Virus record (IMG/VR): IMGVR_UViG_3300033182_000980
Coordinates: 124,001 to 188,000 of that record
Direction: 5' to 3' (one strand)
DNA length: 64,000 bases
In this document: piece after piece, positions 5,638 to 51,742 of the stretch
How the letters are laid out: the number at the start of each line of letters is the position of its first letter
Numbering within the stretch: the stretch's first letter is position 1
Translations under genes and position numbers: made by a program
Notes under the pieces: model-generated
What the model was told of the DNA's origin: nothing
Seen by the model: only the letters and a program-made list of their open reading frames with translations
Database searches by the model: none

Positions 5638-6912
5638 ATGATAGCTCGATATGCTTGTCCCCAGATTGAAAGTATCTTCAGCCCGATCCATCGTTTGAGG
5701 ATCTTTGTCGAAATCGAGAGACTTTTTTGTTCGAGTCAAGGATGTCCAGATTCAATCCTTGAGGATTTCTCGAAGGTAGACCTTGAACTGCTCCTTAAAG
5801 ATTTGGCTGTTAAGGAAAAAGAAACCCGACATGAGACGGTCGCTTTCATACAGGCTCTAGGGCTTCAGATGAGTAAGGAGTCCTTGCCTTATCTTCATAA
5901 GGGGGCAACCTCGTCTGACATCCTTGACACTTGTCTTGCAACACAGATGATGAACGCTTCTGATGTTGTCATTCAAAAGATTGAGTATCTTCTTGAAACG
6001 CTCAAGAAGAAGGCGATTGAATATAAAGACACTCCCATCTTAGGACGCTCTCATGGGATGTCGGGTGAGATCACGAGCTTTGGGGTTATCTTGCTTGGGT
6101 TTTATTCAGAGTGGACTCGAAACTTAGAACGCATGAAGAGAGCACAAGAAGAAATCTCTGTCGGGAAAGTATCTGGTGCTATGGGGAACTATGTTCATAT
6201 AGACCCTCAAATCGAGAAAACAATATGCAAGGCTCTAGGGCTTGATTTTGAGCCTGTTTCGACTCAAGTAATACCAAGAGATAGACACGCATACTTTATG
6301 AGCGTATTGGGCATTTTAGGGGCATCTATGGAACGCTTATCCATAGAGGTGAGAAACTTATCACAGTCTCTCATACAAGAAGTGGCAGAAGGGTTCGGTA
6401 AAGATCAAACAGGATCATCAGCTATGCCCCATAAAAGAAATCCAATCCTGTCCGAGAACCTAACTGGACTAGCTCGTATGATCCGATCTTATGTTCAGCC
6501 TAGCCTTGAGAATGTATCTCTTTGGTATGAACGAGATATGAGTCATTCATCTGTAGAGCGTATTGCCATAGAGGACTCCCTACATCTCGTTTGCTTTGGT
6601 CTAAGCAGACTTAATGGGGTTATCAAGAACCTTTATGTAGACGCAGACAGGATGGCTCATAATATAGACCAAGTTAAAGGGTCTTATTTGAGTCAGACTT
6701 GTCTCTTGTTCCTCATGGACAAGGGGTACGCTAGAGATGATGCGTATAAGGTAGTCCAAGAGATGACCCTTTATGGTCAGAAAGATCTCCTTGATGTTTT
6801 ACAAGGGGTCAAAGAGGCGGGTCATTTGACGCAAGAGGAGTTAGATCAGATCACTTCGAGAGATCGCTTTTTAGCTCGGACGAGCTTGATCTTCTCTAGG
6901 TTCGGTCTTTGA
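5638..6912 (+). CDS. purB: Adenylosuccinate lyase
   Basis: Fumarase-superfamily signature GSSAMPHKRNP, plus H.GATSSDI.DT, GRSHG and ERDMSHSSVER; full length at 424 aa. Confidence 0.95.
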   Translation: MIARYACPQIESIFSPIHRLRIFVEIERLFCSSQGCPDSILEDFSKVDLELLLKDLAVKEKETRHETVAFIQALGLQMSKESLPYLHKGATSSDILDTCLATQMMNASDVVIQKIEYLLETLKKKAIEYKDTPILGRSHGMSGEITSFGVILLGFYSEWTRNLERMKRAQEEISVGKVSGAMGNYVHIDPQIEKTICKALGLDFEPVSTQVIPRDRHAYFMSVLGILGASMERLSIEVRNLSQSLIQEVAEGFGKDQTGSSAMPHKRNPILSENLTGLARMIRSYVQPSLENVSLWYERDMSHSSVERIAIEDSLHLVCFGLSRLNGVIKNLYVDADRMAHNIDQVKGSYLSQTCLLFLMDKGYARDDAYKVVQEMTLYGQKDLLDVLQGVKEAGHLTQEELDQITSRDRFLARTSLIFSRFGL

Positions 6913-10210: not shown

Positions 10211-11488
10211 TCACCCTAAGAACCTTCCTACCTTAACAATCACTGACTCCTCATCCGAACGAATGTCTCCCTCCCAAATCACAAGGCAATCCAGCCCCAC
10301 CTCCGCATAAGCCTCTATCGTATTACGCTCATGCTCCTCTTTACTCATTCCTGTTAACGCTTGTGAGTGCCAATACCTACCAAAACACTCGACCACCTTT
10401 GTAGCACCCCTATAAGGATGTTCGGGATCATCACTCACACAAACTACAAAGTCTGGGTTCTTAAAGCCACCAATCGAACCGTCAAAGTTCTTCTTGCTTG
10501 GAAGAAATCTCCAATATGCCCCATTACCTGTAAAGGTGAGATTGTCGCTATATGAAGCTACCCTCGACTCAAACTTGTTCATCTCTTTCTGACTCATAAG
10601 CAAGATAGGGAACTCCACACCATACCTTGCTTTTAGAGTATCTTGAACCTTACCCCAATGTCCCTCAATAGCACCTGGAAACTCAACCCCATAACGATCC
10701 ATCATCGTAGCCCTAATCTCCCCCTTGCCTTGCTCGGACGCAAAGTAGTGGCTTCCATAGTTTTCAATCATCGTCTTGAGTTGTTTCTGCCTAAACTCCT
10801 CCACAGCACTCGTGTAAGGCACACCGTATCGCTCCATGTTAGTCGCTACAACCTTCTCCATGACTTCTTCACTCATGCTAGGGATCGGCACTCCATAACG
10901 CTCTATATTCGTTGCCTCAATCTTAGCCCTTAGCTCTGCTGACCCGAATAGCGTCCCACCATACCTCTCAAGATTAGTAGCCAATGTCTTAGCCTTGACC
11001 CCATCATTCTGTTGAGGGTTGACTACACCATATTTCTCAAGGTTCGTCTGCTTGATCTTATCCTGTACGCTCTCCCAAGCAAAAGGGTTATCCTTACCCT
11101 TTAAGATTGGACGCTTACCATCAAGAGCCTCTTGCACCTTTTCAAAGACACTACTCTCCTTTGAGAAAGGGTTCTCTGCACCATAACGCTTGAGGTTAGT
11201 CTGTTTACGCTTCTCCACAGACTCTTTGCTGTGGGCAGGATTCTCAACCCCATAACGATTTAACATAGTTTGTTTGCGTCTAAACTTTGAGATCGCTTTC
11301 TTATCTCGACTTTGCCATACCCCACATCCACTCTTATGTCTTTTCATCTGTGAGTTTGAGGTAGATTCATGTCCACAGATACATGGTGTGATTGGTTCGG
11401 GTTTCCAGTTAGGCCAGCACTTTGCCATGTGGCGGCTATTGATTCGATCCCCTTTGAACTCTCTTTTACAGTGAGGGCAAGTAGCCAT
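10211..11488 (-). CDS. Putative homing endonuclease (Zn fingers, YG repeats, Vsr/DUF559-like nuclease)
   Basis: N-terminal CPHC and C.CGH motifs; nine (R/K/N)YG repeats; C-terminal NPDFV...VVECFGRYWH...CLVIWE. Confidence 0.8.
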   Translation of the reverse strand: MATCPHCKREFKGDRINSRHMAKCWPNWKPEPITPCICGHESTSNSQMKRHKSGCGVWQSRDKKAISKFRRKQTMLNRYGVENPAHSKESVEKRKQTNLKRYGAENPFSKESSVFEKVQEALDGKRPILKGKDNPFAWESVQDKIKQTNLEKYGVVNPQQNDGVKAKTLATNLERYGGTLFGSAELRAKIEATNIERYGVPIPSMSEEVMEKVVATNMERYGVPYTSAVEEFRQKQLKTMIENYGSHYFASEQGKGEIRATMMDRYGVEFPGAIEGHWGKVQDTLKARYGVEFPILLMSQKEMNKFESRVASYSDNLTFTGNGAYWRFLPSKKNFDGSIGGFKNPDFVVCVSDDPEHPYRGATKVVECFGRYWHSQALTGMSKEEHERNTIEAYAEVGLDCLVIWEGDIRSDEESVIVKVGRFLG

Positions 11489-11661: not shown

Positions 11662-12546
11662 TCAAAGAAAGTTTCGAGGTGCTAAAACGCCCCGACCCAC
11701 ATGGGGTCCGAAGGCGGAGCGGATACCCACACCGTACTTGGGCTGTTTTAACCCACGCATATATTTTGTAGTGCGAGCTTTTGCTTCGACAGACATCGAC
11801 CACATTTGCTCGGCAGAGGATTTGAGTCCTTCATACTTGCTTGATCTGTCGATGTTGAGTGAGATGCCACCTATCGAATAGTCAAACTCGTCCACGATCC
11901 AGTTTGCTTGTAGAGCCATAGCCGCAAACTGTATAGCACCTTGAAGGATAGGGGTTCTCCAAGCAGGTTTTTGGTTTACGAGAGCATCGAGGTTTTGGAG
12001 TTCTTCAGTTTCGGGTGGTTGCATATTCCACCAGTCTAAAGCTCGCTCTAGGTACTCTAGGAACTCCTCGTCCTCCCACACTTGACCAAAGACTCGGTTG
12101 TACGAACCGATATTCGCTTCATGCTCTGGTGGTCTGAAGTGATAATACTTGTCTGGGCAGTTGTGGACAACCACATCAGAACCTTCGAGTACAAGGTTAT
12201 GGTTCTCCTCAACAGTAAGGTCGAACATAAAGGGTCTGTTTTCGATGACCTCGATATTGGAAATCTTAGTTGTTCCTTGTGATGTCTGTAAGCTAAGTCC
12301 TACGGACAGCTCTTCTGCTGGAACACAAAGGTTAGGAGACATATAGACTCGGTGTCCACCTGTGATAGTGAGATGTTTACCTTGCTCTGTGGTGATTTTA
12401 TAAATGGGTTCAATAGGTGTAGGGTTCTTATGGGCTTTAGAGATCTGCTTCCAAGAGAAATCACCTTGAGTGTCCATAGATTTGATTGATAGCTTCCCTT
12501 TTTTGAAAGCGTCTTTAATCTTCTGTGTTTGTTCTTGAGATGTCAT
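11662..12546 (-). CDS. C-half of fractured gene: IntC (aa 1-129) plus 165-aa C-extein, putative virion neck/head-completion protein
   Basis: Intein block B ITGGH, block F MFDLTVEENHNL, block G VVHN followed by +1 Cys. Own RBS AAGGAG; ATGA overlap with the upstream stop. Confidence 0.9.
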   Translation of the reverse strand: MTSQEQTQKIKDAFKKGKLSIKSMDTQGDFSWKQISKAHKNPTPIEPIYKITTEQGKHLTITGGHRVYMSPNLCVPAEELSVGLSLQTSQGTTKISNIEVIENRPFMFDLTVEENHNLVLEGSDVVVHNCPDKYYHFRPPEHEANIGSYNRVFGQVWEDEEFLEYLERALDWWNMQPPETEELQNLDALVNQKPAWRTPILQGAIQFAAMALQANWIVDEFDYSIGGISLNIDRSSKYEGLKSSAEQMWSMSVEAKARTTKYMRGLKQPKYGVGIRSAFGPHVGRGVLAPRNFL

Positions 12547-13418
12547 AGTCCCAACTCCTTTTCAGTCCATGTTTGGTAAGACCAACCATTATCTTCAGCA
12601 ACTTTTTGAGACAGGGCTAACCTAGCGATAACATCTTCTCGGTTTAAAGCCCATTGTGGTTTAACTTCAACAAGAGTAGTAGATCCATCTTGATAGTGGA
12701 CAACAAAGTCGGGGAGTATTGTTCTTCCAGCAACTTTGTATATTGGCTCATAGGTATAGCTTTTGACATTAGGGTCTGACTCTAAGATGGAGATTGTCTT
12801 TGCTTCATAGCTTGAGCGAACACGAACCTCATCTTTATTGCCTTTAGGAGTAGCCTCTATTGAGGTTTTGCCTCTAAGGTAAGGTGTTGGGTTCTCTTTC
12901 ATTCTAATCGCTTGATCGTTCGATCTCCTTGCTCTTTCTTCGGGATCGTGGTGAAAGTCCATGAGCTTCTGCTTCACATCTGGATTTCCCCACACATCCT
13001 CTAAACTGTGGGCAGAAGCCTTTGCTTTGGAAATCGGATTGTCCCACCCCTTTTTAAGATTATCACGCTCATGTTGTGGTCGAACTCTCCCCCGATGGAA
13101 GTCAAAGTCTCCTTTAGCCCATTGTTTTTTTAGTTGCTCAGACCTATCCATACCTTTGGTAGATCGACCTGCATTAGCACCTAGCTTCTTGCGTTTGTCT
13201 TGAACTGCTTTACAGCCTTTCGCTTTGGTCAGCCTCTGAATAGACCCGTTGGAAAGACCTGTGATTTCGGTCATCTCTTTCCAAGAGAACCCTTGCTTAT
13301 GGAGATGTGAAACAAGAGCAGAACGCTTTTCTACAATCTCTTTAGCTACTCGACCTTTTTTGTTCAGTTGCTCTATTGTGAGGTCAAACTTAACTAGCAG
13401 TTCTTCAAGCATTTTCAT
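12543..13418 (-). CDS. Free-standing endonuclease (HTH plus TnsA-like PD-(D/E)XK domain) lying between the intein halves
   Basis: N-terminal HTH GFSWKEMTEITGLSNGSIQR; C-terminal RSSYE...DPNV..Y.YEP...PDFVV.Y.DG...LVEVKP; RBS AGGAG. Confidence 0.8.
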   Translation of the reverse strand: MKMLEELLVKFDLTIEQLNKKGRVAKEIVEKRSALVSHLHKQGFSWKEMTEITGLSNGSIQRLTKAKGCKAVQDKRKKLGANAGRSTKGMDRSEQLKKQWAKGDFDFHRGRVRPQHERDNLKKGWDNPISKAKASAHSLEDVWGNPDVKQKLMDFHHDPEERARRSNDQAIRMKENPTPYLRGKTSIEATPKGNKDEVRVRSSYEAKTISILESDPNVKSYTYEPIYKVAGRTILPDFVVHYQDGSTTLVEVKPQWALNREDVIARLALSQKVAEDNGWSYQTWTEKELGL

Positions 13419-13905
13419 CTCCTATGATGTCATATAGTTCTTCGATAGGGAGTGTGATCTTTTCACCGTCAGCATCAACAGTGACGAGTTCTTCTCCAGC
13501 AAGGCACTGATCTCTAAGGAGCATACGCAACTTATAGATCATTTGTTTTTGACCCTCGGTGAGTTGTAATCCGAGTACAGCGTTCTCTGCGACTACCCCG
13601 AACTCTTGGACAACCGTTTGGGGTTGGCTGTTGACCAACTCTTTGAGCGTCCATCGTATGCGATAGCGACCATAGGTAGCTGTGGTGGGTATGCGTACAG
13701 AGGCATAGTATTCACCAACAGATGGGTTTTCTGGTATGCGAGCAGGATCACCAATGAGTACATCAGTTTCGGGTGGTCCAGGATCAACATAATAAAGTGC
13801 GTAAGTGATCTCGGCGGCGTTTGCGACATTCCCATTTGAGTTTGTGAGGAAGATGTCGAGGTCGCCACGAGAGAGGATTTGATTTCTTTTAAATGCTACA
13901 GCCAT
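13405..13905 (-). CDS. N-half of fractured gene: 133-aa N-extein plus 33-aa IntN
   Basis: Ends LRDQ/CLAGEELVTVDADGEKITLPIEELYDIIGDENA, i.e. intein block A; Cys codon at 13506-13504; RBS AAGGAGG. Confidence 0.9.
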   Translation of the reverse strand: MAVAFKRNQILSRGDLDIFLTNSNGNVANAAEITYALYYVDPGPPETDVLIGDPARIPENPSVGEYYASVRIPTTATYGRYRIRWTLKELVNSQPQTVVQEFGVVAENAVLGLQLTEGQKQMIYKLRMLLRDQCLAGEELVTVDADGEKITLPIEELYDIIGDENA

Positions 13906-14017
13906 GATGTGAGCCTCCTTTAATAAAGGTTGGGTTATAAACGAGCTAAAAATCCTCTTAATATCTTTTATATTGTAGGGGTTTAGTAAGTTATACCAAT
14001 TACAAAGGAGATACCTT

Positions 14018-14545
14018 ATGTGTGTGATTACAGAGGGGATTACAGCTCAACTGCTTAAAGGGGGTCTAGTCCGACTCAATGACGGATCTGTTTATAGGTT
14101 AGAAGACTGCAAGCTAGAAGCAGGGGGTCGTCTTGTTCTTGCTGTGGGTATTAAAAGGGAGAAGCCTAGACCGAAGCCTAGACTAAAAATAGTGGGGGAA
14201 GTGAACCTTGAGGGAGTAGAGGTGAGTTTGGGTGATTTCTCTTTGGAGACACAAGAGATCATCTTACACCCACCTAAAGAGCCACCACCTCCATTTGAAC
14301 CTCCAGCTACTCTTATTCCTTTTAGTGTTGTGGGAGCGACTTTGCTTTATCTGCTCAAGAAGGTGTCTGGTCTTGATCGTAAGTTAAAGCATGGTTCATG
14401 TGAAGTAAGACATCAAGAAGCGATTACTCGTATTGCGAAGTTAGAGGGTAAGGTCTTGAGGAAGCAGGTTGTGGACGGGGGTAAAGCAGTTAAAGCTAAA
14501 CTTGATGAGAGGAAGGCGAATAAGGGTAATGATGGGGGAGTCTAA
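14018..14545 (+). CDS. Membrane protein, possibly holin-like
   Basis: One TM segment followed by a coiled coil (CEVRHQEAITRIAKLEG); directly upstream of a CHAP-containing gene. Confidence 0.45.
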   Translation: MCVITEGITAQLLKGGLVRLNDGSVYRLEDCKLEAGGRLVLAVGIKREKPRPKPRLKIVGEVNLEGVEVSLGDFSLETQEIILHPPKEPPPPFEPPATLIPFSVVGATLLYLLKKVSGLDRKLKHGSCEVRHQEAITRIAKLEGKVLRKQVVDGGKAVKAKLDERKANKGNDGGV

Positions 14546-14601
14546 AGGGCTTAATACTTTTTTTATACTCGTCCATGTAGGTAAACGAAGGAGAACGACT
14601 T

Positions 14602-15987
14602 ATGAAAATACTTGTAGGTGGAGATGTCAGCTTTGGAAGAATCTATGAAGATGAGAGGATTTCTTATTCAGCACCTTTGTGTTTAGCTTCCATAGGCGAG
14701 TTGGAGCGAGATTATTGTATCTTTAATCTTGAGAGCCTTTTTTGCGATGACTGGAAGGCAAATAAAAGAGATGTAGATGAGAAGTGGGGTACGAGCTACA
14801 CCCATGCTAATCCAGAAGATGTGAAGCATCTCATTGAGTGTGATGTAGATCATGTTTCCTTAGCTAACAACCATACACTTGATTGGGGTGAGGCAGGGGT
14901 CGAACAGACCTGTAAAGTCCTCAACAAGTTTGGCATCTCACATTCTGGATGTGGTTCTAATGATAGGACTCACATAGATAAAGAGAAGAAAATAATAGTG
15001 TTCTCGATAGATACGGTTGAGTGCCACTACAAAAAAGAAGATCCTTTAAACTGCAAAGAGGACATCAAAGACTTCTTTAAAGAGGTTAAAGAGCTTAGAG
15101 CAAAGCACGAGGATTACCTTCTGATTTGTTGTGTTCATTGGGGTCGGTTTAGGGTGAGTCCGAACAAGGGTCAGAAATCTATGGGTCGGAAGCTCATCGA
15201 CTGTGGCATTGATGTTGTTTTAGGTAATCATTCACATAAGGTGCAATACTTCGAGATGTACAAGGGTAAGCCTCTGTTTTACTCATTAGGGAACTTGTAC
15301 TTCACTCATAGAAATCCAGAATACAATAAGCCACCAAATGTTCATTACGCTTACCTCTCAACTCTTAACTTTGAGGGGCGAGATTTTAAAGGTGTAGACC
15401 ACCATCAAACTTGGTGTGACGATAAGAAGGTGGTTCTTAAAGAGGAGAAGCCCTCTAATCTTGGATTAGAAGCGTTGAGGTTTGCTCGGAGCTATATTGG
15501 CTTTGGGGAGTCCGAGCATACGACTAATGTTGGTTGGTTTATGAAGCACATAGACGCACCCAATAAGGAGACAGCGGCGTGGTGTGCGAGGTTTGTATTT
15601 TACTGTATTAAGAAAGCCTGTGAAGAGAATGGTATTGATCCAGTCCTAGAGAAGAATGACAAGACTGGATATGCTAAAGAGCTTTATAAGCAGATTGCAG
15701 AGATCGGGTATGTCTCATTAAATCCTATGCCTGGAGACATTATCGTTTGGGACAGGAAAGAGGAAGGAAACAAGAACGGACATATCGGGATAATAGAGTA
15801 TGTAGAGGGAGATAAGATCACAGCCATTGAAGGAAACAGAGCACCAAATCCTGGTTCAAAGGTTGATCGTTTTACTTACTCTTTGAACGAGCTTTTAAAC
15901 TACAAAGAGTGGGATGACGAAGATAAGCATTTCCATCTTTTTGAAGGGTTTGCTCGCCTACCTCATCTTAAAAAGTTGGACAAGTAA
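14602..15987 (+). CDS. CapA-family metallophosphoesterase fused to a CHAP amidase/peptidase
   Basis: CapA motifs GD, NLES, LANNHTLDWG, HWG, GNHSH, YSLGN. CHAP motifs AWCARFV, PGDIIVW, GHIGIIE, IEGN. Confidence 0.85.
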   Translation: MKILVGGDVSFGRIYEDERISYSAPLCLASIGELERDYCIFNLESLFCDDWKANKRDVDEKWGTSYTHANPEDVKHLIECDVDHVSLANNHTLDWGEAGVEQTCKVLNKFGISHSGCGSNDRTHIDKEKKIIVFSIDTVECHYKKEDPLNCKEDIKDFFKEVKELRAKHEDYLLICCVHWGRFRVSPNKGQKSMGRKLIDCGIDVVLGNHSHKVQYFEMYKGKPLFYSLGNLYFTHRNPEYNKPPNVHYAYLSTLNFEGRDFKGVDHHQTWCDDKKVVLKEEKPSNLGLEALRFARSYIGFGESEHTTNVGWFMKHIDAPNKETAAWCARFVFYCIKKACEENGIDPVLEKNDKTGYAKELYKQIAEIGYVSLNPMPGDIIVWDRKEEGNKNGHIGIIEYVEGDKITAIEGNRAPNPGSKVDRFTYSLNELLNYKEWDDEDKHFHLFEGFARLPHLKKLDK

Positions 15988-16826
15988 TGAAGATACTAGT
16001 TGGAGGAGACATATCCTTTGGTCGTATTTACAAAGGAAAAGAAATCCATTATGGCACTGATGGGTGTCTAACCGAGCTTGCTTTGATCCCTAGAGATTAT
16101 TCTATTTTCAATCTTGAGAGTCCTCTCACAAGGAAACCAAGAGTGAAACTACCTAAGCCACACGCTGGTGTTTATTTGTATGGTGAGATCAGTGATGTTA
16201 GGCATCTTTTAGACTCAGATGTGGACTATCTCTCTCTAGCCAACAATCACGCTATGGACTTTGCTTCAAGTGTCGAAGATACAATCTCCACTCTTGATAA
16301 GGTTGGCATCTCACATTCGGGTACAGGCACAGACTATTTGAAGCCCCATATAGATCACGATCTTGGGTTGGCGATTTTCTCAGCCGACTTAATCGGTAAG
16401 TATGCGTATGAAGATCCTGTCTGTTGTGGCCCTTACTTTCTTGACTTGTTGGTAAAAAAAGTCATCCCTCATTATCGAAAGCTAATTCCCGATTATGCGT
16501 TCCTATGTTGCGTACATTGGGGAGCTGAATATGAAATGCCAACTGAGGAGCAAAAGAGGGTCGGTAAAAGGCTCATTGATTGTGGTGTGGATATGGTTAT
16601 CGGTCATCACCCTCATGTAATACAGCCTATGGAAGTCTATAAAGGTAAGCCTATTTTTTATTCTTTAGGCAACTTGTACTTTACTCATCACAGGAAAGAC
16701 TTAGAAGCGAGGGATGATACACATCTTGGTTGCTTATCTTTAGTTGAAATGAATGGTAGAGAGTATGTAGGGCATACCGATTACCATACATGGACGATAA
16801 GTGGAGAGAGAGTGTTTTTGTTATGA
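15987..16826 (+). CDS. CapA-family metallophosphoesterase (standalone paralog)
   Basis: GDISFGR, NLES, LANNHAMDF, HWG.EY, GHHPHVIQP, YSLGN. Confidence 0.9.
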   Translation: MKILVGGDISFGRIYKGKEIHYGTDGCLTELALIPRDYSIFNLESPLTRKPRVKLPKPHAGVYLYGEISDVRHLLDSDVDYLSLANNHAMDFASSVEDTISTLDKVGISHSGTGTDYLKPHIDHDLGLAIFSADLIGKYAYEDPVCCGPYFLDLLVKKVIPHYRKLIPDYAFLCCVHWGAEYEMPTEEQKRVGKRLIDCGVDMVIGHHPHVIQPMEVYKGKPIFYSLGNLYFTHHRKDLEARDDTHLGCLSLVEMNGREYVGHTDYHTWTISGERVFLL

Positions 16827-17047
16827 GCAAGAAAAAGTACGAGAAGATAGACCACCCCGACCATTATCAAGCAAAGGGGATGGAAGCCATAGATGTGATT
16901 GAGGCTTACAACCTCAACTTTTCGCTTGGGTCTGCGATCAAGTACATCTTGAGAGCTGGAAAGAAACCAGGTGAGAGTTCTATTGAGGACTTGAACAAAG
17001 CGATCTGGTATCTTCAACGAGAGGTAGAGAGACACCAAGAGAGTTGA
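16823..17047 (+). CDS. DUF3310-like phage protein
   Basis: IDHPDHY...EAIDVI...GSAIKYILRAGKK...EDLNKAIWYL. Confidence 0.85.
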   Translation: MSKKKYEKIDHPDHYQAKGMEAIDVIEAYNLNFSLGSAIKYILRAGKKPGESSIEDLNKAIWYLQREVERHQES

Positions 17048-17080
17048 TTTCATATAAGGGGTTATTATCTGACCTCTTTT

Positions 17081-17548
17081 ATGAAAGGACTGCTCATGTC
17101 TAATATGGAGACTTCTCGTGAAGCACTTGAGTCCATTGAGCCTCAAATCACAAACATAACAGATCGGGTTTACCGACACATCCTCTCTAAAGGCGATCAA
17201 GGCATAACAGACGATGAGGGCTTTAGGGCGTTGGGTATGAACCCAAATACATATCGTCCATGTCGGATCAATCTCATGGATAAAGGTCTTGTTCTTAACA
17301 CGAATACTAAGGGCATCACCGAGTCGGGTCGAAAGGCTTGGCGATGGAAGGCTGTGCCAGAGTCTGAAGCTGTGCCTCCAAAGCGAGTAAAAAAGAGACA
17401 ACGAAAGACGCTCCCCTCTGTTGATCCTGTACCTTTGCCCGAAGGATATGACATCAGCCTCAAAGATGCGAGAAATCGTATGCTCGCTAAGTTAGATGTG
17501 GCAGACGAGTGCCGTTGTCCGTGTTGTGGGGTCAGCGTCAGTAAGTAG
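17081..17548 (+). CDS. Putative winged-helix DNA-binding protein with C-terminal CPCC
   Basis: GITDDE...LGMNPNT.RP.RINL.DKGLV......TESGRKA pattern. Confidence 0.55.
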   Translation: MKGLLMSNMETSREALESIEPQITNITDRVYRHILSKGDQGITDDEGFRALGMNPNTYRPCRINLMDKGLVLNTNTKGITESGRKAWRWKAVPESEAVPPKRVKKRQRKTLPSVDPVPLPEGYDISLKDARNRMLAKLDVADECRCPCCGVSVSK

Positions 17549-17782
17549 TGTCATTTATTGATGGGTAGTAAGGTATAACCTTTAAATTAAATCCAGAATA
17601 AAGACACTTGAAATGAACCGACAACTTTATTGTGCCTTAGTCAGCCTAGCTTGCTTCTTCTATGCCCGATACCTCAACTCAAAGTCCTCGGAGGGAATGA
17701 GTGATGAAGAGTATCGGGATAGGCTCAATGACATCACATTCTATTCTCTGTTTGGAACGACTGCGTTGTTGTTGAGCTTCTT

Positions 17783-18328
17783 TTAGCGTTTGATAGAGAT
17801 GACGAGATCACTGCCCCCTCTAGCTGTGAAGTCAATGCCCCTAGCTAACTTCTCTGCGTCAATGTAATCAACCTCATCGCCTTCATCATAGTTAGCATTT
17901 TGTTCAGCAACCCCTAAGTTATATTCATTAATCCATTCACTATTTTTAAACCCATTAATGAAGGCTGTCTGAAATCGTCCGTCCACTGCAATAAACTTTC
18001 CTGTTTTTGAACAAACAAGCCCAGCCCACCAGCGAGCACTAGGTTTAGTTGCAGGTAAAACATCTACGCCAGAAAGGACAATCTCTCCATGACGCAAAAG
18101 AAAACCTGCCCAGTTATCCCCAAGAGCACGACCAACCTTATTTGAGAGGGTCATTACTTCTTTACGCTTCATACCCTTAGCTTCTTCCCATAAGGGGAGT
18201 TTGATTCTTAGCTGACTAAGAATCTTTACAACCTCGGTGGACTTGATGTGGTTTTCAGACGCTTGTCTTTCGAGCCGAGCGACTCTCATTTCAAGGCTTC
18301 TGATTACTTCACTTGCTGATTTTCTCAT
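17783..18328 (-). CDS. Leader-tagged protein 1 (MRKSASEVIRSLEMRVARLERQAS)
   Basis: Start reassigned to ATG 18328 (GGAG RBS); shared leader; motif B upstream. Confidence 0.8.
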   Translation of the reverse strand: MRKSASEVIRSLEMRVARLERQASENHIKSTEVVKILSQLRIKLPLWEEAKGMKRKEVMTLSNKVGRALGDNWAGFLLRHGEIVLSGVDVLPATKPSARWWAGLVCSKTGKFIAVDGRFQTAFINGFKNSEWINEYNLGVAEQNANYDEGDEVDYIDAEKLARGIDFTARGGSDLVISIKR

Positions 18329-18379
18329 GGTTTTTTCTCCATTCAAGGTTAAGGTTAAAGAGATCACCAATGAGAAGAT

Positions 18380-18391
18380 ATAAACAAACTA
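18380..18391 (-). promoter_or_regulatory. Motif B (TAGTTTGTTTAT)
   Basis: Upstream of leader-tagged ORF 18328. Confidence 0.55.
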
Positions 18392-19135
18392 TTGGTCTAG
18401 GGGTGGGATCTTCCCATGCTTGACGAAGTTAGCGTGGGCGAGAGGCCATAGCTTTTGGATTTGCCGAGAAATCTCTCTAGCGAGTAGTTTGATCTCCCAT
18501 TGAGCGTCAGCGTGATCTCGTTTAGCAATAAAGCTATTAACCCAGTTGTGGAGAGAACCTGTCGCCCAATAAGTTGTGTATAGGTTCTGTGGAAGAACCA
18601 TACGAGCTTGATCTCTTGCGACCCCTTTTTCGACTAACTGATTATAGAGTCGGATAGATTCAGTCGCATGGTTCTTGATAGCAGAGACAGCATCTAGCTT
18701 GAGGAACTTAGGGAAGTCATTGGGGTCGAACTCAACTACAGGGTTGAAGGTTTCGTCAAGGCTGGCTTGCCTGTTCTTAGTGTCTTGCTTACGCATCTCA
18801 CTTGGGAAGTAAAACTCGATGTCCGAGCTTGTGTATCGCCTAGAAATCTCGTTGTAAGAAAATGTTCTGTGTCTCATCTGTTGTCGTGCAACGAAGAGGG
18901 GGGCTTTGATCCAAAACGATACGACATTATGTTCTGTGGTTGAGGTGTGCCCTTCTTTGATGAGGAAGTTGCAGAGTCGTTCCTCACGCTCACCCATCTC
19001 TGTGCTGACTTGCCCTAGACTCGCCCTAGCACTGTTGACGATTGTGAGGTCATCGCCCATAGCTTGAATGAGGGCTACTCCTCCGATACCGTCATCATAA
19101 ATACTGACCATCTCAGATCTAAAGTCATTCGTCAT
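18389..19135 (-). CDS. thyX: FAD-dependent thymidylate synthase
   Basis: ThyX motif RHRTFSYNEISRRY, plus GH.STTEH and ARDQARMVLPQ. Confidence 0.95.
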   Translation of the reverse strand: MTNDFRSEMVSIYDDGIGGVALIQAMGDDLTIVNSARASLGQVSTEMGEREERLCNFLIKEGHTSTTEHNVVSFWIKAPLFVARQQMRHRTFSYNEISRRYTSSDIEFYFPSEMRKQDTKNRQASLDETFNPVVEFDPNDFPKFLKLDAVSAIKNHATESIRLYNQLVEKGVARDQARMVLPQNLYTTYWATGSLHNWVNSFIAKRDHADAQWEIKLLAREISRQIQKLWPLAHANFVKHGKIPPLDQ

Positions 19136-20360: not shown

Positions 20361-21242
20361 ATGCTTCATCTCTTAGACCCCTTTACAGCTCATAAAATAG
20401 CTATTTCTTTACTAAAAAGATCTTTTCCGTATCCGAAAATCCATGACCCACATAATGTATTTGGGTTAGATTTCCCTAATCGGTTAGGTCTTAGTGCTGG
20501 CTTCGATAAAGACGCGGTTGCTTTGAGGGGCTTAAAGTCTTTCGGCTTCGGTCATGTGGAGGTAGGTACAGTCACTCTTGCTATGCAGAGAGGGCACACC
20601 CCTCAGTATATAGAGAGGCAACCAAACGCACTTATCAATAAGCTCGGACTCCCTAATGTCGGGGTGAACCAGATGGTTCAAAACATCAAAAAATGCCGAC
20701 CTAAAGGATTAGTCCTTGGAGGCTCTATCGCTTATGGCGATATGGGAAATCCTGGATATTGTCTCACCGAGATTTATGAGACATTCTCCCGACTGCGTAA
20801 GAGTGTAGATTACATCGTCCTAAATGGGTCTTGTCCGAATGTAGAGACACCAGAGAACATATATAAATGCTTAAACCTCATAGACCATACTGACACCCCT
20901 GTTCTTGTTAAGCTCCACATCATGGAGGACAAGATGAAGTTGATTCACACTTTAAATGTTCTCAAGGAGAGCGGGGTTAAGGGAGTGATCTGTAGCAATA
21001 CGCTCCCCACAGTAAAAGGGGGGTTGTCGGGCAAGCCTCTAACACATATCGGGCATCAGCAGTTAGAATGGGTGAAAGAGAACAGCGACTACCCTGTGAT
21101 TTCTAGTGGAGGTGTGATGACCCCTCAAGATGCTGTTGATCGTATTCGTCTTGGGGCTGATCTCGTACAGGTATATACAGGCTTCGTTTACGGAGGGATA
21201 ACCTTCCCTTATCGAGTGGCTAAGGCGATGAGGGGTTTGTAG
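20361..21242 (+). CDS. pyrD: Dihydroorotate dehydrogenase (class-2-like, compact)
   Basis: LDP..AH, GLSAGFDKD, GFGHVEVGTVT, N.LGLPN.G, SCPN, GGLSGKPL, ISSGGV, GADLVQVYTGFVY.G. Confidence 0.92.
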   Translation: MLHLLDPFTAHKIAISLLKRSFPYPKIHDPHNVFGLDFPNRLGLSAGFDKDAVALRGLKSFGFGHVEVGTVTLAMQRGHTPQYIERQPNALINKLGLPNVGVNQMVQNIKKCRPKGLVLGGSIAYGDMGNPGYCLTEIYETFSRLRKSVDYIVLNGSCPNVETPENIYKCLNLIDHTDTPVLVKLHIMEDKMKLIHTLNVLKESGVKGVICSNTLPTVKGGLSGKPLTHIGHQQLEWVKENSDYPVISSGGVMTPQDAVDRIRLGADLVQVYTGFVYGGITFPYRVAKAMRGL

Positions 21243-25976: not shown

Positions 25977-27158
25977 ATGTTTTTTAAAAACTTAAAGTCA
26001 TTAGCTAGGTCAAAGAAATCTAGCCTCTGTGTTGGTCTTGACGATCCGAATGAAAGCCAAAGGGTAGAGAGAGTCTGCTCAATCATAGATCAGACTGAAC
26101 CTTATGTGGTCTGCTACAAGTTAAACCCAGCTTTCTATCATGGTAATGCAGAGCATATAAAAGCTATTACAGATTACATGAATGAGAGAGGTCTACTCTG
26201 GATCTACGATGGGAAGCTCGGAGATGTGCCTCATACAAACACCGAGTATGCCAAGTATGTTTATGATGTCTTAGGGGCGAGTGCCATGACAGCCCACCCT
26301 TATTGTGGATATGACTCCCTCACTCACCTCATTCGTAAAGATAAAGGTCTATTCGTCTTAGCGAGGACTACAAACCCTTATGCGTATAAGATACAGAGTC
26401 GGGTTCAAGATCACCTCTATGAGTGGTGTAGTCGTTCTAAAGAGATGGGTCTTGTTGTAGCTGGTAATAAAGAGGCTTTCCTACATGAGATTAGAAAGAA
26501 CCTTCCGAACACTTGGTTCTTATCACCAGGCATCGGGGCACAAGGTGGGGGGATCAGATATGCTGTTCCAAACACTCTGTATTCAATGAGTCGGACGATC
26601 CTAAACGCATCCAATCCTGCTGAAGTGGCGAAGGAATATGGTAGGCAGTCTTACTTTGATTTAGAGATTGAGCTTGAACACCACGAACTCATCAAGAGGG
26701 GAGAGTTCACATTAGCGAGTGGTCAGAAATCTAACCTGTATATTGACCTCAAGGGAGTGAGTGGAGTACCCGAACTATTTGATCGCATCGTTCACGAGCT
26801 GATTGAACTTCTCCCCACATCACATCAGATTGTGGGGATGGCAACTGCGGGTATCTCTTTCGCTTCTGTAATGGGTTCTTACCTCAATCGACCTTTTGGG
26901 TATGCGAGATCAGAGATCAAGTCGCATGGTACAGGGAAGATCATTGAGGGTAATGTTCAAAAGGGAGTGCCGATTGTCCTCATTGAAGATGTGGTATCGA
27001 CAGGGGGTTCATTGATTAAGGCTATCCTTGCCCTTAGAGAGCAAGGATATGAGGTTAATCAAGCGATTTCTGTAGTGGACAGGGGTATGGGTGGGTCAGA
27101 GGCATTAAAGGCAATAGGGGTTGATTTAAAGAGCCTTCTTAGTATGCACGATGTTTAA
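25977..27158 (+). CDS. pyrFE: Bifunctional OMP decarboxylase / orotate phosphoribosyltransferase (PyrF-PyrE fusion)
   Basis: N-terminal half: LCVGLD, YKLNPAFY, DGKLGDV, SPGIGAQGG. C-terminal half: FTLASGQKSNLYID, VLIEDVVSTGGS. Confidence 0.93.
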   Translation: MFFKNLKSLARSKKSSLCVGLDDPNESQRVERVCSIIDQTEPYVVCYKLNPAFYHGNAEHIKAITDYMNERGLLWIYDGKLGDVPHTNTEYAKYVYDVLGASAMTAHPYCGYDSLTHLIRKDKGLFVLARTTNPYAYKIQSRVQDHLYEWCSRSKEMGLVVAGNKEAFLHEIRKNLPNTWFLSPGIGAQGGGIRYAVPNTLYSMSRTILNASNPAEVAKEYGRQSYFDLEIELEHHELIKRGEFTLASGQKSNLYIDLKGVSGVPELFDRIVHELIELLPTSHQIVGMATAGISFASVMGSYLNRPFGYARSEIKSHGTGKIIEGNVQKGVPIVLIEDVVSTGGSLIKAILALREQGYEVNQAISVVDRGMGGSEALKAIGVDLKSLLSMHDV

Positions 27159-41390: not shown

Positions 41391-44300
41391 ATGGCTATTG
41401 AAGGCGGCTACGCACCACCTGGTGTTTACACCCGAACAATTTTTGAAGATACCAATACTAATCTCGCTCAGCTACAAGGGAAAGTACCTACCCTCATTGG
41501 TGTAGGTAAACAAACCTTTTCTGTGACTGGTAGTGAGTTAGTGAGGGGGTCTTCTGCAACCATAGATCAAAGGATTGTAGAAGAAGATCCTACAGGTCGA
41601 ATGATTGCTGACACAAACCCCGATGGTTCTTTTGTCCTCTCTGACTTTGATGGTGTCTTGACAGAAGTATATGTGAGACACTTCCCAATCGTAACTGGAG
41701 ACGGATCGGGAACTACCTCAAATACCCCTAGCTCTGTATCAGCGACTATCAATGGCAACGCTACTGTTATCCTTGAGGTTGATGGTGCGAATGGGAAAAT
41801 TCGTCTCGCAGAAGCACCGAGTCAAGGTGATGATGTTAGGATTTCTTACTTCTTCAATCGTACAGATACTTTTGTTGAAGATGAGGTTTTAACCTCACAG
41901 GTTTCTGATTTCCAAACAGAGATCAGAGGTTCTGCTTCTACTTTTGTGATCACTGCCGAGACTAATACTCTTATCCTCACTTGTGACGGTGAGACTCAAG
42001 TCCTCACACTTGGTGTTGAAGCAAATAGAGCCGACTCTCTCGATAAGGTTCAGAACATCATTAATGGTGCGAGTATTGGATCACTTGAGGCAAGCACCTA
42101 TGTAGACCAAGACGGCTCGGAGAACCTTCTTCTTTCTGCTGATGGCGAAATCATCGTAGGTGCAGGTTCTGCTAACCTCGCTCTTGGTATTTACACCAAT
42201 CAGAGAGGCACAGCTAGAAATCGTACCTTCTTCACCACGAACGGACCGATTGTTGACGGAACAAACGCTGGTGTCATCACTACTGATGTTAGCCTCATCA
42301 CAGTTAAAGTAAATAACGCTGTCGTTCAAGCCGAGTCTGTTGACGGTGCAAATGGGTCGTTTACTCTTGCGAGTCCTCCATCGGTTGGCTCGACAGTAAG
42401 TGTTTCTTACTACCACAACACATTCCGAGATCAGTTCGATTACATCCCTGGTCGTGATGTTAAATCACTTGATCGTGTTTCACTTGTTGCGAGTGGTGGA
42501 GGAGCGGCAGCTCAGTTCATTCAAGATGTAGATTTCGTACTACATGACGATAAGATCGTTTGGGGTACTGCTTCAATCGTATCTCAAGGTGATATCCAGA
42601 CTGGTAATACTGCATTCGGCACTACTCAAGTTTCAGCCCTTCTTCGTGATGAGCGTGGGTATCTCTTAGAGTGTTCTCCTGTTGTTAACACTAGCGTGAT
42701 CCCACCAAGAGTCCTAGCAAATACCTTTAAACTCCCTTATCAGCCTGTGGACGGTACAGGGTCGGGTATTCCTAGCTCTAATCCAGCTCTTATCCAAGTA
42801 CGCACAGGCGTTTCATTTGCTGACGCACTAGAAAACCCTGTAGCGACTGTGACTAGAGTTGATCCAGCTACTTCACAGATTACTCTTGCGACAGCACCAC
42901 CTACAAACCACAAGGTGTTCGCTACATTCTTCTATAGCATCCTCCAAGATCGCTTTGATCTTAATGCTTATAATGTGGCAGTTGAAACCGTTGGTGCAAG
43001 TGGTATTGGTACATACACCCTTACTTCTGGTACGACATCATTCTTCGGAGCAGAGCTTACAGCTAAGGGGGCTGATCTCTCCGAGGTTGTGGTCGAGTTC
43101 CCAAGTGGTTCAGAAGCTCTTATCGGCACTCGTTTCTCTGGTGGTGTTCCTGTAGAGGAGACTATCACACTTGAGTTTGGTGATTTTGAGGCTACTCCAG
43201 CAGTCTTCTTTGCCGAGGGGTCAGCTTCTTATTACCTTGTTCAAGGTCAGAGCGACACTCTTAATATCACAGTAGATGCACAGCCTGTGGTTGTTGAGTT
43301 CGATCAGCCTACCGAGGGTGGTCGTACAGGACACATCACACACCAAGTTGGTGAGGTTCTTCCTTACACAGCAGAGTCAAACAACGCTGATCTTGGTACA
43401 GGGATTTCTACTTCGGTTGATCTCGTTGTTGATGGTAAGGCACTTGCTTCGGCTACTGTTGCTGGTGATGACAAGACTGTCGATCACCTTATCACAGAAA
43501 TCAACACACAGGCAGAGGCTGTTCCAGCTTCTTACACTGCCATGTCCCCATTCGGATCATGGGAGGCTAAGAACAACACCTTTAAGTCGTTCGAGTTTAG
43601 GTATGTAGGTTCTACGAGTGGGCCTTCTGCAACTTTGACAGCTACCATTGCCGAAGCAGTTTATGGTAATGCGTCTGCTCTTGCAGGTGACTCTGACCTA
43701 GCTGATGTAAATAACTCGACAGGTGTCAATAAAGCGATTCAGACAGCGATTGAGACTTATGTTGCAGGTGCAGGAGCCGCTGTCTTTGATGGTCTTGAGA
43801 TCACAGTAAGTGCTGATACAAGCAACCGTCTTGTTTTCTCACTTGTTGGCGTTCCTAATGTTGCAGATGGTGCAGGTGGGGATGACGATTTCGGATATGT
43901 GGAGTTCATTGGTGCTGATGATGATACCTTCCTATCAGTAGCTGGTATCGACTATGATGTTGCAGGTGGTACTCAGTCTAAGTGGGGTCAGCTACCTGTA
44001 GCTTCTAAGGTTTCCACAGCTCTTGGTGGTGGTGCTCTTAGAGATCGTTTGATTCTCAAGAACCGAACCTTTGTAGGTAATAACTACTACCCACCTGTTG
44101 ATCTTGGCTTGAGCGTCACCACTGGTACTAACCTTGATCTTATGGGTATTTCACCTACCCTTAATGTTGTAGGCACTCGTACCTCAATCCTCGATAAACC
44201 TTCTATCCGACTTACAGTTGGATGGGACGAGGTTGACGCTAACGGTATTCCAGCTAAGATTCTTTACAATGGTGATACAGAGGATGCTAATAACATCCTT

Positions 44301-49375: not shown

Positions 49376-49449
49376 GCACCCATAGCTCAGCTGGATAGAG
49401 CACCACTTTCCTAAAGTGGGTGTCGCAGGTTCGAGTCCTGCTGGGTGTA
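49376..49449 (+). tRNA. tRNA-Arg(CCT)
   Basis: Cloverleaf; anticodon arm CCACT-TTCCTAA-AGTGG. Confidence 0.93.
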
Positions 49450-49692
49450 CTAGGTTCTCCCACCATTCCTTTATTTTAACTAGGGGAAATTAGGCTTACA
49501 ATGGTGGGAGGGTCTTATCCTAGACAATAACCTTAGAAAATAAAGAACTGCTTACAAGTCTAGGAGTAAGCCTGTAATCCCTCAAAATCTACCATGTGGG
49601 GGGTCGCCGTGAGATAATGTGGTGGGGTGATTCTCTCTGACCTAGTTAGTCCAAACTTGAGAGATTTCTATTGATAATCATGGAGTATAGTC

Positions 49693-49770
49693 ATGGGAAA
49701 CCCTAACTATCCATCCAAGTCCGGAAACCCAAGTGGTGGTGGACGCGGAAATACCCCGAAGTCTAAATGA
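49693..49770 (+). CDS. 25-aa G/P/N-rich peptide
   Basis: MGNPNYPSKSGNPSGGGRGNTPKSK with a GGAG RBS 7 nt upstream. Confidence 0.45.
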   Translation: MGNPNYPSKSGNPSGGGRGNTPKSK

Positions 49771-50097
49771 GACTTGACAAGATCAACCTTGACCTCTTAA
49801 ATGAGGTCGTGTTGAACAATGCCTTGTGTCTTACCCAGACATTCCTTACCCTTTGATCTGTGGGGTAGGCAAATCAGATCAGCTCTTTCTTCTTTGGAAG
49901 ATACTCCCCCTAGTTGTTCCGTAGGGTAGAGCGAAAACGGAACGCTTAATATGTCTGACTCCTCTTGGTGGAGCTTGTCGGGTTCGACTCCCACAGATGT
50001 ACTAGACCCTCATATCTTTTTCATTCTACATATTAACTTAGCTTTTATGTTGAATGGTGTATTGGGATAAAGTATGAGTTTTTGAGGGTCTAACTTT

Positions 50098-50171
50098 GCA
50101 CCAGTAGCTCAGTTGGATAGAGCAGTGGCCTTCTAAGCCATTGGTCGTAGGTTCGAGTCCTACCTGGTGCG
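50098..50171 (+). tRNA. tRNA-Arg(TCT)
   Basis: Cloverleaf; GTGGC-CTTCTAA-GCCAT. Confidence 0.95.
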
Positions 50172-50173
50172 TT

Positions 50174-50275
50174 TGCTTGATTGGTATTCAACCTCTTATT
50201 GGAGAGTCATCTCTAATAGGGTTGGTGCTTCTTTAAGAGGTTCAAACTCTGGTTCGATTCCAGATCAAGCAACCA
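50174..50275 (+). ncRNA. tRNA-like RNA with encoded CCA and non-canonical core
   Basis: Acceptor TGCTTGA/TCAAGCA plus ACCA; T-arm TCTGG-TTCGATT-CCAGA; 67-nt interior with a long hairpin. Confidence 0.6.
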
Positions 50276-50599
50276 CTCCCTGTTCCTAATAGGAACTCTT
50301 CAAACGGACGCATAGAGGGAATGGGGAAACAGACAAGCGTTTGCCGAAAGGGTCTTGTCTGGGGGATGCTTACGCTTCTGATTGCCACCGTAGATGAAGA
50401 TGTAGCTCTTGGGGAACTATGGTTTCGCAACATAACCTAACCAAGAGGGGAGTATTCCAAAAATGTTTAAAGGTGAAGCGAGGGCATTACACCAATGCGA
50501 ATACGGTATCGGGGAAGTCTGCTCATTCCTCTCGTTCACATCTCATCTATCTTTGGTAGAAGGGGTGTGAGCCAATCTTATGTCAAAAAGGAATGTGTC

Positions 50600-50872
50600 A
50601 TGTCTAAGAGAGTAGAAGATCTAAGAATTCTTGTGAACAAGAAAATGAAGCTCGATAAATACTTGAGTATCTGTGAGGGGCTTCATTATGTTTGTTTTTT
50701 CATGCTCATCTTCTATGTAGTCACATTCAAGAATGGAGACACACCTTATTTGATTTCTTGGGCGTTTCTTGCACTTATTGGTTGGGTAGCTACAACGATA
50801 CTTGAGAAGAAGATAGTCCAAGTGAAACTAGAAATGACATCAGAGTTGTTTGAAAGTAAATCGCAAGAGTAG
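50600..50872 (+). CDS. Small two-TM membrane protein
   Basis: Two hydrophobic segments; start reassigned to 50600. Confidence 0.55.
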   Translation: MSKRVEDLRILVNKKMKLDKYLSICEGLHYVCFFMLIFYVVTFKNGDTPYLISWAFLALIGWVATTILEKKIVQVKLEMTSELFESKSQE

Positions 50873-50935
50873 CTCAGTCGGTAGAGCGTCAGCCTTCCAA
50901 GCTGAATGTCGCGGGTTCGAGACCCGTCTCTTGCT
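50863..50935 (+). tRNA. tRNA-Gly(TCC)
   Basis: Cloverleaf; TCAGC-CTTCCAA-GCTGA. Confidence 0.95.
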
Positions 50936-51005
50936 TTGACCCCAAGTTCATTTCCTTTTTCGATTTGAGCGTTGACCTTTGGGTTATGGTCTTGGGGTTT
51001 CTTTT

Positions 51006-51079
51006 GCTCACTTAGCTCAGTTGGTTAGAGCAACGGACTGTTAATCCGTGGGTCCAAGGTTCAAATCCTTGAGTGAGCG
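51006..51079 (+). tRNA. tRNA-Asn(GTT)
   Basis: Cloverleaf; ACGGA-CTGTTAA-TCCGT. Confidence 0.95.
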
Positions 51080-51187
51080 TACCTCCTTTGGTTGGTGGTT
51101 AAGAGCAACCATGATCCCTCATGTAAATGGGTTGTGCAAAGATAGCTTCTAGGTTGTTGGTCGCTTCTTTGTTTAGGGATCGCTTAT

Positions 51188-51259
51188 GTACCTGTAGCTC
51201 AACGAACAGAGCCTCATCGTTGTAGATGAGAGGTCTAGGTGTAAGTCCTAGTGGGTACA
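51188..51259 (+). pseudogene. Degenerate tRNA-Thr-like element
   Basis: All stems pair, but the anticodon loop is 8 nt (CGTTGTAG), the T-loop is TGTAAGT and the D-loop lacks GG. Confidence 0.6.
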
Positions 51260-51659: not shown

Positions 51660-51742
51660 GGACAGGTGGCCGAGTGGTTAAAGGCATCAGACTGTAAATC
51701 TGACCTCGTGAGAGTACGCAGGTTCAAATCCTGCCCTGTCCA
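51660..51742 (+). tRNA. tRNA-Tyr(GTA)
   Basis: Class II cloverleaf; TCAGA-CTGTAAA-TCTGA. Confidence 0.95.

Follow-up and report, generated by a model that had tools for sequence, protein, structure and literature searches.

A rare CapA-CHAP fusion gene in a recombining slot of a marine huge-phage genome, and its possible role as an accessory peptidoglycan peptidase

We analysed a 64,000-nucleotide stretch of DNA (the window), corresponding to bases 124001-188000 of the 375,691-bp IMG/VR virus record IMGVR_UViG_3300033182_000980, a marine myovirus genome rated complete by CheckV, and centred the analysis on a gene in which a CapA-family domain is fused to a CHAP domain. The fusion gene (14602..15987, + strand) encodes 461 amino acids plus the stop codon and is preceded by a strong ribosome-binding site (AAGGAG, 8 nt 5' of the start). 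Residues 2-234 of the product match Pfam PGA_cap (PF09587; E 3.4e-41, 141.8 bits, gathering cut-off 27), and residues 323-412 match Pfam CHAP (PF05257; E 3.8e-11, 43.8 bits, cut-off 26). From Pfam, the fold match in the PDB and residue mapping, the CapA/PGA_cap domain, of calcineurin-like fold, was delimited to residues 1-285 (14602..15456, +); residues 286-461 (15457..15984, +; Pfam, PHROG and fold matches) comprise a linker helix and a CHAP cysteine peptidase domain of the NlpC/P60 superfamily. The AlphaFold2 model of the protein (predicted local distance difference test, pLDDT, 88.2; predicted template modelling score, pTM, 0.90) suggests a fixed mutual arrangement of the two domains. The next gene, capA2 (15987..16826, +), whose start overlaps the stop of the fusion (TAATG), encodes a stand-alone, soluble CapA/PGA_cap protein of 279 amino acids (PGA_cap E 6e-41, 141.1 bits).

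Both proteins begin directly at the first catalytic motif (MKILVGGD). No signal peptide or transmembrane segment was detected in the fusion (maximum 19-residue hydropathy 0.86), and neither a signal peptide nor a membrane anchor in CapA2 (maximum 0.82). The CapA motifs are complete in the fusion: D8, E44 (FNLES), N90-H91..D94 (ANNHTLD), H179 (VHWG) and H210/H212 (GNHSH); and in CapA2: D8, E44, N87-H88..D91, H177 and H208/H210 (GHHPH), and the family-conserved GGD, FNLES, ANNHxxD, VHWG, GxHxH and SLGN motifs are common to both. The CHAP half retains Cys328 (WCA), His394 (GHIG) and E410-G-N412, which are invariant across the four aligned fusion lineages. A first-pass annotation, made from the sequence alone, had described tandem CapA-family genes with intact metal motifs, the first of them with a C-terminal CHAP domain carrying its Cys and His; the list of open reading frames (ORFs), the Pfam matches and the residue mapping bear out each of these points.

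The fusion is a genuine ORF under strong purifying selection and not an artefact, because it recurs in frame in independent assemblies and its ratio of non-synonymous to synonymous substitution rates (dN/dS) is low. The ORF is present in four other IMG/VR contigs from different metagenomes (93-100% identity), and in-frame fusions were recovered from Tara, ENA and Logan assemblies at 81% identity (P0002, contigs up to 369.5 kb), 54% identity (P0003, contigs up to 360.8 kb) and 36% identity (P0008, a 213-kb contig). The CapA-CHAP boundary (about nt 15457), a junction at which the first-pass annotation had considered an assembly artefact, is read through with the frame intact by Logan contigs from four separate studies, which excludes that origin. 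Compared with the 93% identical relative (L007), dN/dS was 0.067 for the CapA half and 0.091 for the CHAP half (the ratio was saturated for more diverged pairs).

The architecture is rare: the domain-architecture search found it in about five protein clusters. In the word-based search PGA_cap and CHAP occurred together in only four clusters (among the best 120 of 409 significant matches), and when the CHAP half by itself was the query, the word search yielded nothing beyond the three close clusters of fusions. A HMMER profile of the CHAP half gave 2,541 matches among 1.84 billion representatives, only three of them at E<=1e-30: the P0003 cluster, the P0008-like P0135 and a 177-aa stand-alone CHAP. 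When ten longer profile matches were scanned with Pfam, PGA_cap was present only in P0135 and P0137; the other long matches were LysM-free CHAP proteins paired with PG_binding_1, Phage_lysozyme2, Amidase_5 or nothing. Searches by fold among viral and Atlas models gave CapA and CHAP proteins singly and never joined, the ESM-Atlas search giving CapA with other partners (Memo, FG-GAP) and none with CHAP, and literature searches on CapA plus CHAP, or on PGA_cap in phages, found no description of the fusion. The stand-alone CHAP protein P0136 was considered as one half of a split CapA/CHAP pair and rejected, its upstream ORF not being CapA-like.

P0137 (976 aa), encoded on a 19.5-kb phage-like contig (JGI 3300072015, uncultured), resembles the window fusion in having an intact-motif PGA_cap domain at its N-terminus (residues 7-228, E 4.5e-52) and at its C-terminus a CHAP domain (residues 838-923) that is the fourth-best match of the fusion CHAP profile (E 7.5e-30). 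It differs from it in the approximately 600 unassigned residues between the domains, in a CapA domain lying on a long branch outside the jumbo-phage clade described below, and in its genomic context. A second CHAP gene (218 aa) lies approximately 1 kb downstream of the P0137 gene.

The best match in the PDB for both CapA domains of the window, by sequence and by fold, was MslH (8gq9, E 1.8e-15 for the CapA half of the fusion), whose structures (8GQ9/8GQA/8GQB/8ITG/8ITH) are the only solved and biochemically defined PDB relatives of these domains; the next fold neighbours were YmdB-type phosphatases and 5'-nucleotidases. MslH is a Ca(II)-dependent epimerase of the C-terminal Trp of a lasso peptide, with E44, N87, H259 and H261 as ligands and H88/D91 and H295/D11 as dyads (PMC10406935). 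The function of CapA/PgsA has long been open, the poly-gamma-glutamate (PGA) synthetase being an unstable membrane complex, and the discoverers of MslH put forward epimerisation of the gamma-linked Glu of PGA as the activity of CapA (PMC8179263). Seven of the eight MslH residues (D11, E44, N87, H88, D91, H259, H295) have equivalents in both window proteins (in the fusion D8, E44, N90, H91, D94, H179 and H212), which have the calcineurin-like fold of MslH; the eighth, H261, sits in an MslH insertion and has no equivalent, and an extra histidine, His210 (GxHxH), is kept in the window proteins and lost in MslH. MslH also differs in its length (440 aa) and in extra substrate-cleft elements, and the window CapAs are phage-encoded, without a lasso-peptide cluster. 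Matches to the NCBIfam MslH equivalog NF038314 were partial (50.0 bits for the fusion and 56.9 for CapA2, cut-off 700). Against the classical metallophosphoesterase motifs (DxH / GD / GNH(D/E) / H / GHxH), the window CapAs lack the His of motif I (GDVSF) and have Glu44 in place of the Asp of motif II, while motifs III (NNH..D), IV (HWG) and V (GNHSH/GHHPH) are present. To our knowledge phosphoesterase activity has not been demonstrated for any PGA_cap member, MslH being the sole characterised member, so that the phosphodiester chemistry first proposed for these domains finds no precedent in a family whose known enzyme is a peptide epimerase.

A link to the synthesis of PGA, the other polymer originally proposed, found no support either. 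The PgsA/CapA proteins of PgsBCA(E) systems are like the window CapAs in matching Pfam PGA_cap well above the gathering score and in sharing the conserved motifs, but they have an N-terminal membrane anchor and PgsB and PgsC partners, whereas the window forms are short and soluble (279 aa, or 285 aa fused to CHAP). Neither Caps_synth_CapC (PgsC) nor Mur_ligase_M (PgsB) was found in the complete 375.7-kb genome, and the control genomes matched as expected. Without these partner domains and without a membrane anchor, the genes do not form a PGA-synthesis system.

On the CHAP side, TIGR02594 comes closest among the named subfamilies (match over profile positions 2-113 of 132). PHROG matches of the C-terminal half of the fusion were to endolysin and tail-lysozyme families; its fold neighbours include the streptococcal lysin Ly7917 (5d74) and many phage CHAP and PlyB-like endolysins, and most of its 150 closest relatives are small, at 150-250 aa. 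ZC01_075 of Pseudomonas phage ZC01, of the TIGR02594 type, has been annotated as the putative endolysin, its gene lying next to those of a holin and Rz/Rz1 (PMC5418858), and a TIGR02594-type domain in Stenotrophomonas is annotated as a peptidoglycan-degrading domain of a type VI secretion system effector (PMC13055248). The window CHAP has in common with such peptidases the N-terminal helix and the Cys-His core; unlike them, it follows a CapA domain in a fusion protein, and its gene has no recognisable holin or spanin gene next to it. Its best reading from these matches is a peptidoglycan peptidase or amidase. Multi-domain phage lysins are exemplified by staphylococcal LysK (CHAP + Amidase_2 + SH3b), in which CHAP likewise shares a polypeptide chain with another domain, enzymatic or binding; in known lysins, however, the partners are established wall hydrolases or wall-binding modules, and the window CHAP is C-terminal. 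No description of PGA_cap as a lysin partner domain was found in the literature.

The fusion CHAP is the only CHAP domain in the genome, in which no Phage_lysozyme, SLT or M23 domain was found. Another lysin candidate lies about 112 kb from the fusion: a 315-aa ORF (G000:25925-26872; L020:1108-2055) with an Amidase_2 domain (36 bits, cut-off 26), ahead of which a peptidoglycan (PG)-binding-like DGxxGxxT motif was read by eye. This ORF lies just downstream of a divergent ORF that looks chaperonin (GroEL)-like by eye. The fusion is probably not the sole endolysin of the phage, and it is an accessory gene, as close relatives do without it.

The two CapA domains of the window are only 42% identical, and are therefore not the product of a recent tandem duplication. 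In a maximum-likelihood CapA tree, all jumbo-phage domains formed one clade (support 98/95), with the stand-alone forms nested among the N-terminal domains of fusions (the midpoint root served for drawing only, and the direction of change given here is inferred). The fusions P0008 and P0135, whose CapA half is degenerate, branched first, followed by the pair formed by the window fusion and P0002; the CapA domain of the P0003 fusion was sister (83/79) to the stand-alone clade that includes CapA2 (98/99). CapA2 (dN/dS 0.047-0.153) is the orthologue of a CHAP-less CapA filling the same position in other phages, and groups with P0004-P0007 (98/99). Because of this nesting, and because the fusion CHAPs are each other's nearest relatives among the 1.84 billion representatives, it appears most likely that the fusion originated a single time and later yielded the stand-alone CapA by losing CHAP; most likely too, the phage of the window combined the two alternative cassettes, fusion and CapA2, by recombination. 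In the P0008/P0135 lineage E44, the NNH motif, H179 and the HxH motif have been lost, while the CHAP half is 51% identical with its triad untouched; conversely, in the stand-alone CapA lineage CHAP is gone and every CapA residue is kept under purifying selection. Each activity can thus exist apart from the other, and a CapA fold that no longer catalyses can persist, which runs against the obligatory coupling of polymer removal to peptidoglycan cleavage first proposed, and would fit a binding or scaffolding contribution of CapA to the fusion.

The genes lie in a slot bordered on the left by the conserved, divergently transcribed orf166 (13405..13905, -) and on the right by a conserved DUF3310 gene (16826..17047, +; Pfam E 3.3e-16, 89-100% identical in related phages), the likely start of which (16826) gives a 73-aa product, as in its 72-75-aa orthologues. 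The first gene of the slot is orf175 (14018..14545, +), encoding a single-pass membrane protein of 175 aa, identified from its ORF, its hydropathy and an AlphaFold2 model (pLDDT 72.9): a small N-terminal beta domain, a Pro-rich linker, a transmembrane helix at about residues 97-116 (the single hydrophobic segment spans about 96-116) and a long C-terminal helix (128-170). This gene had been labelled holin-like in the first-pass annotation. Only one transmembrane helix is present, no match was found in Pfam, PHROG or NCBIfam, and a protein-atlas feature search gave nothing usable; its homologues form 41 clusters (42-100% identity), several on phage contigs of 296-361 kb, with dN/dS of 0.18-0.22. 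Its occurrence is uncoupled from that of the fusion: it is present in the CHAP-less loci L015 and L018, absent from the fusion-only loci L007 and L011-13, and downstream of the fusion in L028, and no CapA, CHAP or amidase gene was found within about 5 kb of its distant homologues (44-55% identity; L021, L023, L025). The holin label is thus unsupported, there being no family match and no CapA or CHAP gene nearby in distant phages, and orf175 is best described as a real conserved gene, an independent cassette of the slot and not a demonstrable holin. A 315-aa neighbour of the orf175 homologue in L025 was considered as an Amidase_2 lysin and rejected (zero similarity).

The backbone shared at the slot, namely orf166 (or a 298-aa form of it), the DUF3310 gene, orf155 and ThyX, is 89-100% identical at the protein level between relatives, and the content of the slot varies. 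The window and L004, L005 and L006 carry orf175, the fusion and CapA2; L007 (93% identity), L012/L013 (81%) and L011 (54%) carry the fusion only; L015 and L018 carry orf175 and a stand-alone CapA; and L016 a stand-alone CapA only. One contig of run X7 has orf175 and the fusion without CapA2, and a contig of run X3 has the fusion and CapA2, apparently without orf175, an assignment that is tentative as the loose end of the contig matches the start region of orf166. In the 360,751-bp relative L028 the fusion precedes orf175, and DUF3310 is absent. The most telling case is L015, whose flanks are 98-100% identical to those of the window, yet the fusion gene is absent. A further contig (run X1, record 8, 373 nt, depth 4.5) joins window position 14525 to 16823, that is, the end of orf175 to the start of DUF3310; this single low-depth contig hints weakly at a variant with neither CapA gene. 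Thus orf175, the fusion and CapA2 assort in almost every combination and in both orders, and are not a module: the slot is a recombination hot spot in which three independent cassettes sit between two conserved backbone genes. Compared with L012, dN was 0.09-0.16 for the fusion versus 0.06 for DUF3310. An envelope role of the kind first put forward stays plausible, since the CHAP domain is of the peptidoglycan-cutting kind, but the coupled three-gene lysis module that went with it does not survive the independent assortment of its genes.

The left border of the slot belongs to a fractured gene with a candidate naturally split intein, spread over three ORFs (window 11662-13905, -), where relatives (e.g. 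L012:7009-7905, -) have an uninterrupted 298-aa ORF ('...LRDQ/NPDKYYHF...'). orf166 consists of the N-extein (residues 1-133) and 33 aa beginning 'CLAGEELV'; orf294 (11662-12546) has a 129-aa Hint-like part ending 'VVVHN', followed by 'CPDKYYHF...', the 165-aa C-extein; and between the two halves lies a free-standing 291-aa ORF (12543-13418), the L015 orthologue of which has a weak match to a TnsA-like endonuclease. A short IntN (about 33 aa) and a long IntC (about 129 aa) would make this a candidate atypically split intein with an endonuclease gene between its halves. A repeat-containing homing endonuclease of 425 aa (window 10211-11488, -; PHROG 3339, E 8e-31) is part of extra DNA that the window has, compared with L011-L013, between the adenylosuccinate lyase gene and the slot.

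The window also carries a giant tail-sheath-containing protein, nine tRNA genes and many nucleotide-metabolism genes. The sheath protein (1,619 aa; 41391-46250, +) matches the tail-sheath family PHROG 2839 only over its last approximately 335 residues, and so has a very large N-terminal extension; a full-length match was found only in an uncultured 485-kb phage (LR745208, 37% identity). The tRNA genes (49376-56001, all +) are Arg-CCT, Arg-TCT, Gly-TCC, Asn, Tyr, Glu, Lys, Leu-TAA and Met. Around the slot, the nucleotide-metabolism genes at 5638-6912, 18389-19135, 20361-21242 and 25977-27158 were assigned, by synteny with Pfam-annotated orthologues in related loci, to adenylosuccinate lyase, ThyX, dihydroorotate dehydrogenase and an orotidine monophosphate (OMP)-decarboxylase/phosphoribosyltransferase fusion, and their order is rearranged between relatives. 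The region occurs in runs from marine, seawater, aquatic and wetland metagenomes, and close homologues come from Tara Oceans assemblies. By the sheath protein, the nearest deposited relatives (the uncultured 485-kb phage, the Acidobacteria phage Tunturiibacter phage Tunturi_5 and Bacillus phage G) are all very distant, so no host can be called. A DNA-level search of the region against deposited phages gave zero matches, a protein-level search gave partial single-domain matches only and no CapA-CHAP fusion, and a promoter and terminator scan of 13300-18500 gave nothing above chance.

The explanation that we favour, and to which we give about even chances, is that the fusion would be a soluble peptidase of accessory function that attacks peptidoglycan with help from its CapA domain, which would bind or modify a peptide unit carrying a carboxylate; its gene shares a recombination hot spot with a CapA paralogue independent of it and with the gene of a membrane protein unrelated to either. 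Peptidoglycan as the substrate, the role and chemistry of CapA, the timing and location of action and the type of host are inferred. The CHAP half would, most likely, cut the peptide stem of the host peptidoglycan, while the MslH-like CapA half, with its full set of metal and acid/base residues, would grip or modify a carboxylate-bearing peptide unit; candidate targets are the gamma-linked Glu, the meso-diaminopimelic acid (mDAP) or the terminal D-Ala of the stem peptide, and not a phosphodiester. As the fusion has no signal peptide, it would reach the wall only on breach of the membrane, or would act on wall precursors in the cytoplasm. A more specific form, in which CapA recognises, and perhaps stereo-inverts, a stem-peptide residue adjoining the CHAP cleavage site, either the gamma-linked D-Glu, a chemical unit that PGA also contains, or another residue whose alpha-carboxylate is free, is rather improbable.

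Several observations weigh against this explanation. The TIGR02594 match (35.7 bits) lies below the cut-off of that family (70.55); no recognisable holin or spanin was found beside the fusion with Pfam and PHROG, its neighbours being DUF3310, ThyX, dihydroorotate dehydrogenase, OMP decarboxylase/phosphoribosyltransferase and adenylosuccinate lyase; and none of the runs containing the region is an RNA run. A Gram-negative-type host wall is suggested only by the CHAP subfamily and by the PG-binding-like motif/Amidase_2 layout of the other lysin candidate. Moreover, His210, a second-metal ligand of classical phosphoesterases that MslH does without, may leave phosphoesterase chemistry possible, and the existence of CHAP-less close relatives indicates that CapA is useful alone, in a compartment reachable without a signal peptide, which would fit a cytoplasmic role at least as well as a role at the wall.

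The last point leads to an alternative in which CapA, with or without CHAP, would be a cytoplasmic enzyme of host takeover or metabolism, acting on soluble molecules with gamma-glutamyl or carboxylate groups, for example UDP-N-acetylmuramoyl (UDP-MurNAc)-peptide precursors, glutathione conjugates or folyl-poly-gamma-glutamate, with CHAP as an amidase. Small-molecule amidases do occur within the CHAP superfamily, glutathionylspermidine amidase being a precedent for CHAP working as an amidase; neither the fusion nor CapA2 has an export signal, CapA alone suffices in close relatives, and the conserved neighbours listed above are nucleotide-metabolism and folate-dependent genes. However, gene neighbourhood is weak evidence in huge phages, the closest matches of the CHAP half are TIGR02594-type wall peptidases and phage endolysins, and a CapA-family enzyme acting on such substrates would be without precedent; we consider this alternative unlikely. 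The scheme closest to the one first proposed, in which the CapA domains are metallophosphodiesterases that strip a phosphodiester-linked polymer (teichoic-acid-like, or a capsule anchor) before CHAP cuts the exposed peptidoglycan, with orf175 as the holin, could draw on the calcineurin-like fold with YmdB-type phosphatases and 5'-nucleotidases next after MslH, on the conservation in both CapAs of D8, E44, N90, H179, H210 and H212, enough for a two-metal site, and on the co-oriented and tightly packed arrangement of the three genes in the window. It has to contend with the epimerase activity of the characterised PGA_cap member, the missing motif I His (GDVSF), a fusion lineage whose CapA half is devoid of metal ligands, a CHAP subfamily characteristic of Gram-negative systems, where wall teichoic acids are absent, the independent assortment of the three genes and the occurrence of orf175 without any lysin nearby, and is rather unlikely.

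We regard as quite unlikely a gamma-glutamyl polymer depolymerase, in which CapA would bind or epimerise PGA and CHAP would be a gamma-glutamyl hydrolase, clearing a capsule and leaving the wall uncut. PgdS of Bacillus is an NlpC/P60 gamma-glutamyl hydrolase, and gamma-D-Glu bonds are commonly cut by NlpC/P60-CHAP enzymes; genetics links the CapA family to PGA, and epimerisation of gamma-Glu is the activity proposed for CapA; and the slot evolves faster than the backbone, as genes directed at the host surface often do. Nevertheless, with no signal peptide and no sign of virion association the capsule would be out of reach before lysis, PGA-making marine hosts are not known for this phage group, the lineage with a dead CapA keeps CHAP, and the nearest CHAP relatives are peptidoglycan-directed. 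Finally, there is virtually no chance that the fusion reflects an error of assembly or gene calling, or is a pseudogene in decay, given its in-frame presence in many independent assemblies and four read-derived contig sets, its dN/dS of 0.07-0.09 and catalytic residues that are invariant across 36-100% identity.

The slot is a clean case of cassette shuffling between near-identical huge-phage backbones, a pattern that usually marks genes of the phage-host interface. It also supplies a natural control set for the CapA/PgsA question, with CapA alone, CapA-CHAP and CHAP with a dead CapA, in soluble domains of 279-285 aa that make the question directly testable. If the fusion is muralytic, CapA would be a new accessory domain among the lysin architectures for Gram-negative-type walls. 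If, in addition, its CapA domain is directed at gamma-D-Glu, this would be the first CapA-family activity on the cell wall and a new accessory chemistry for lysins, an epimerisation blocking repair or immunity, and the phage proteins would provide a soluble, tractable model for PgsA/CapA function.

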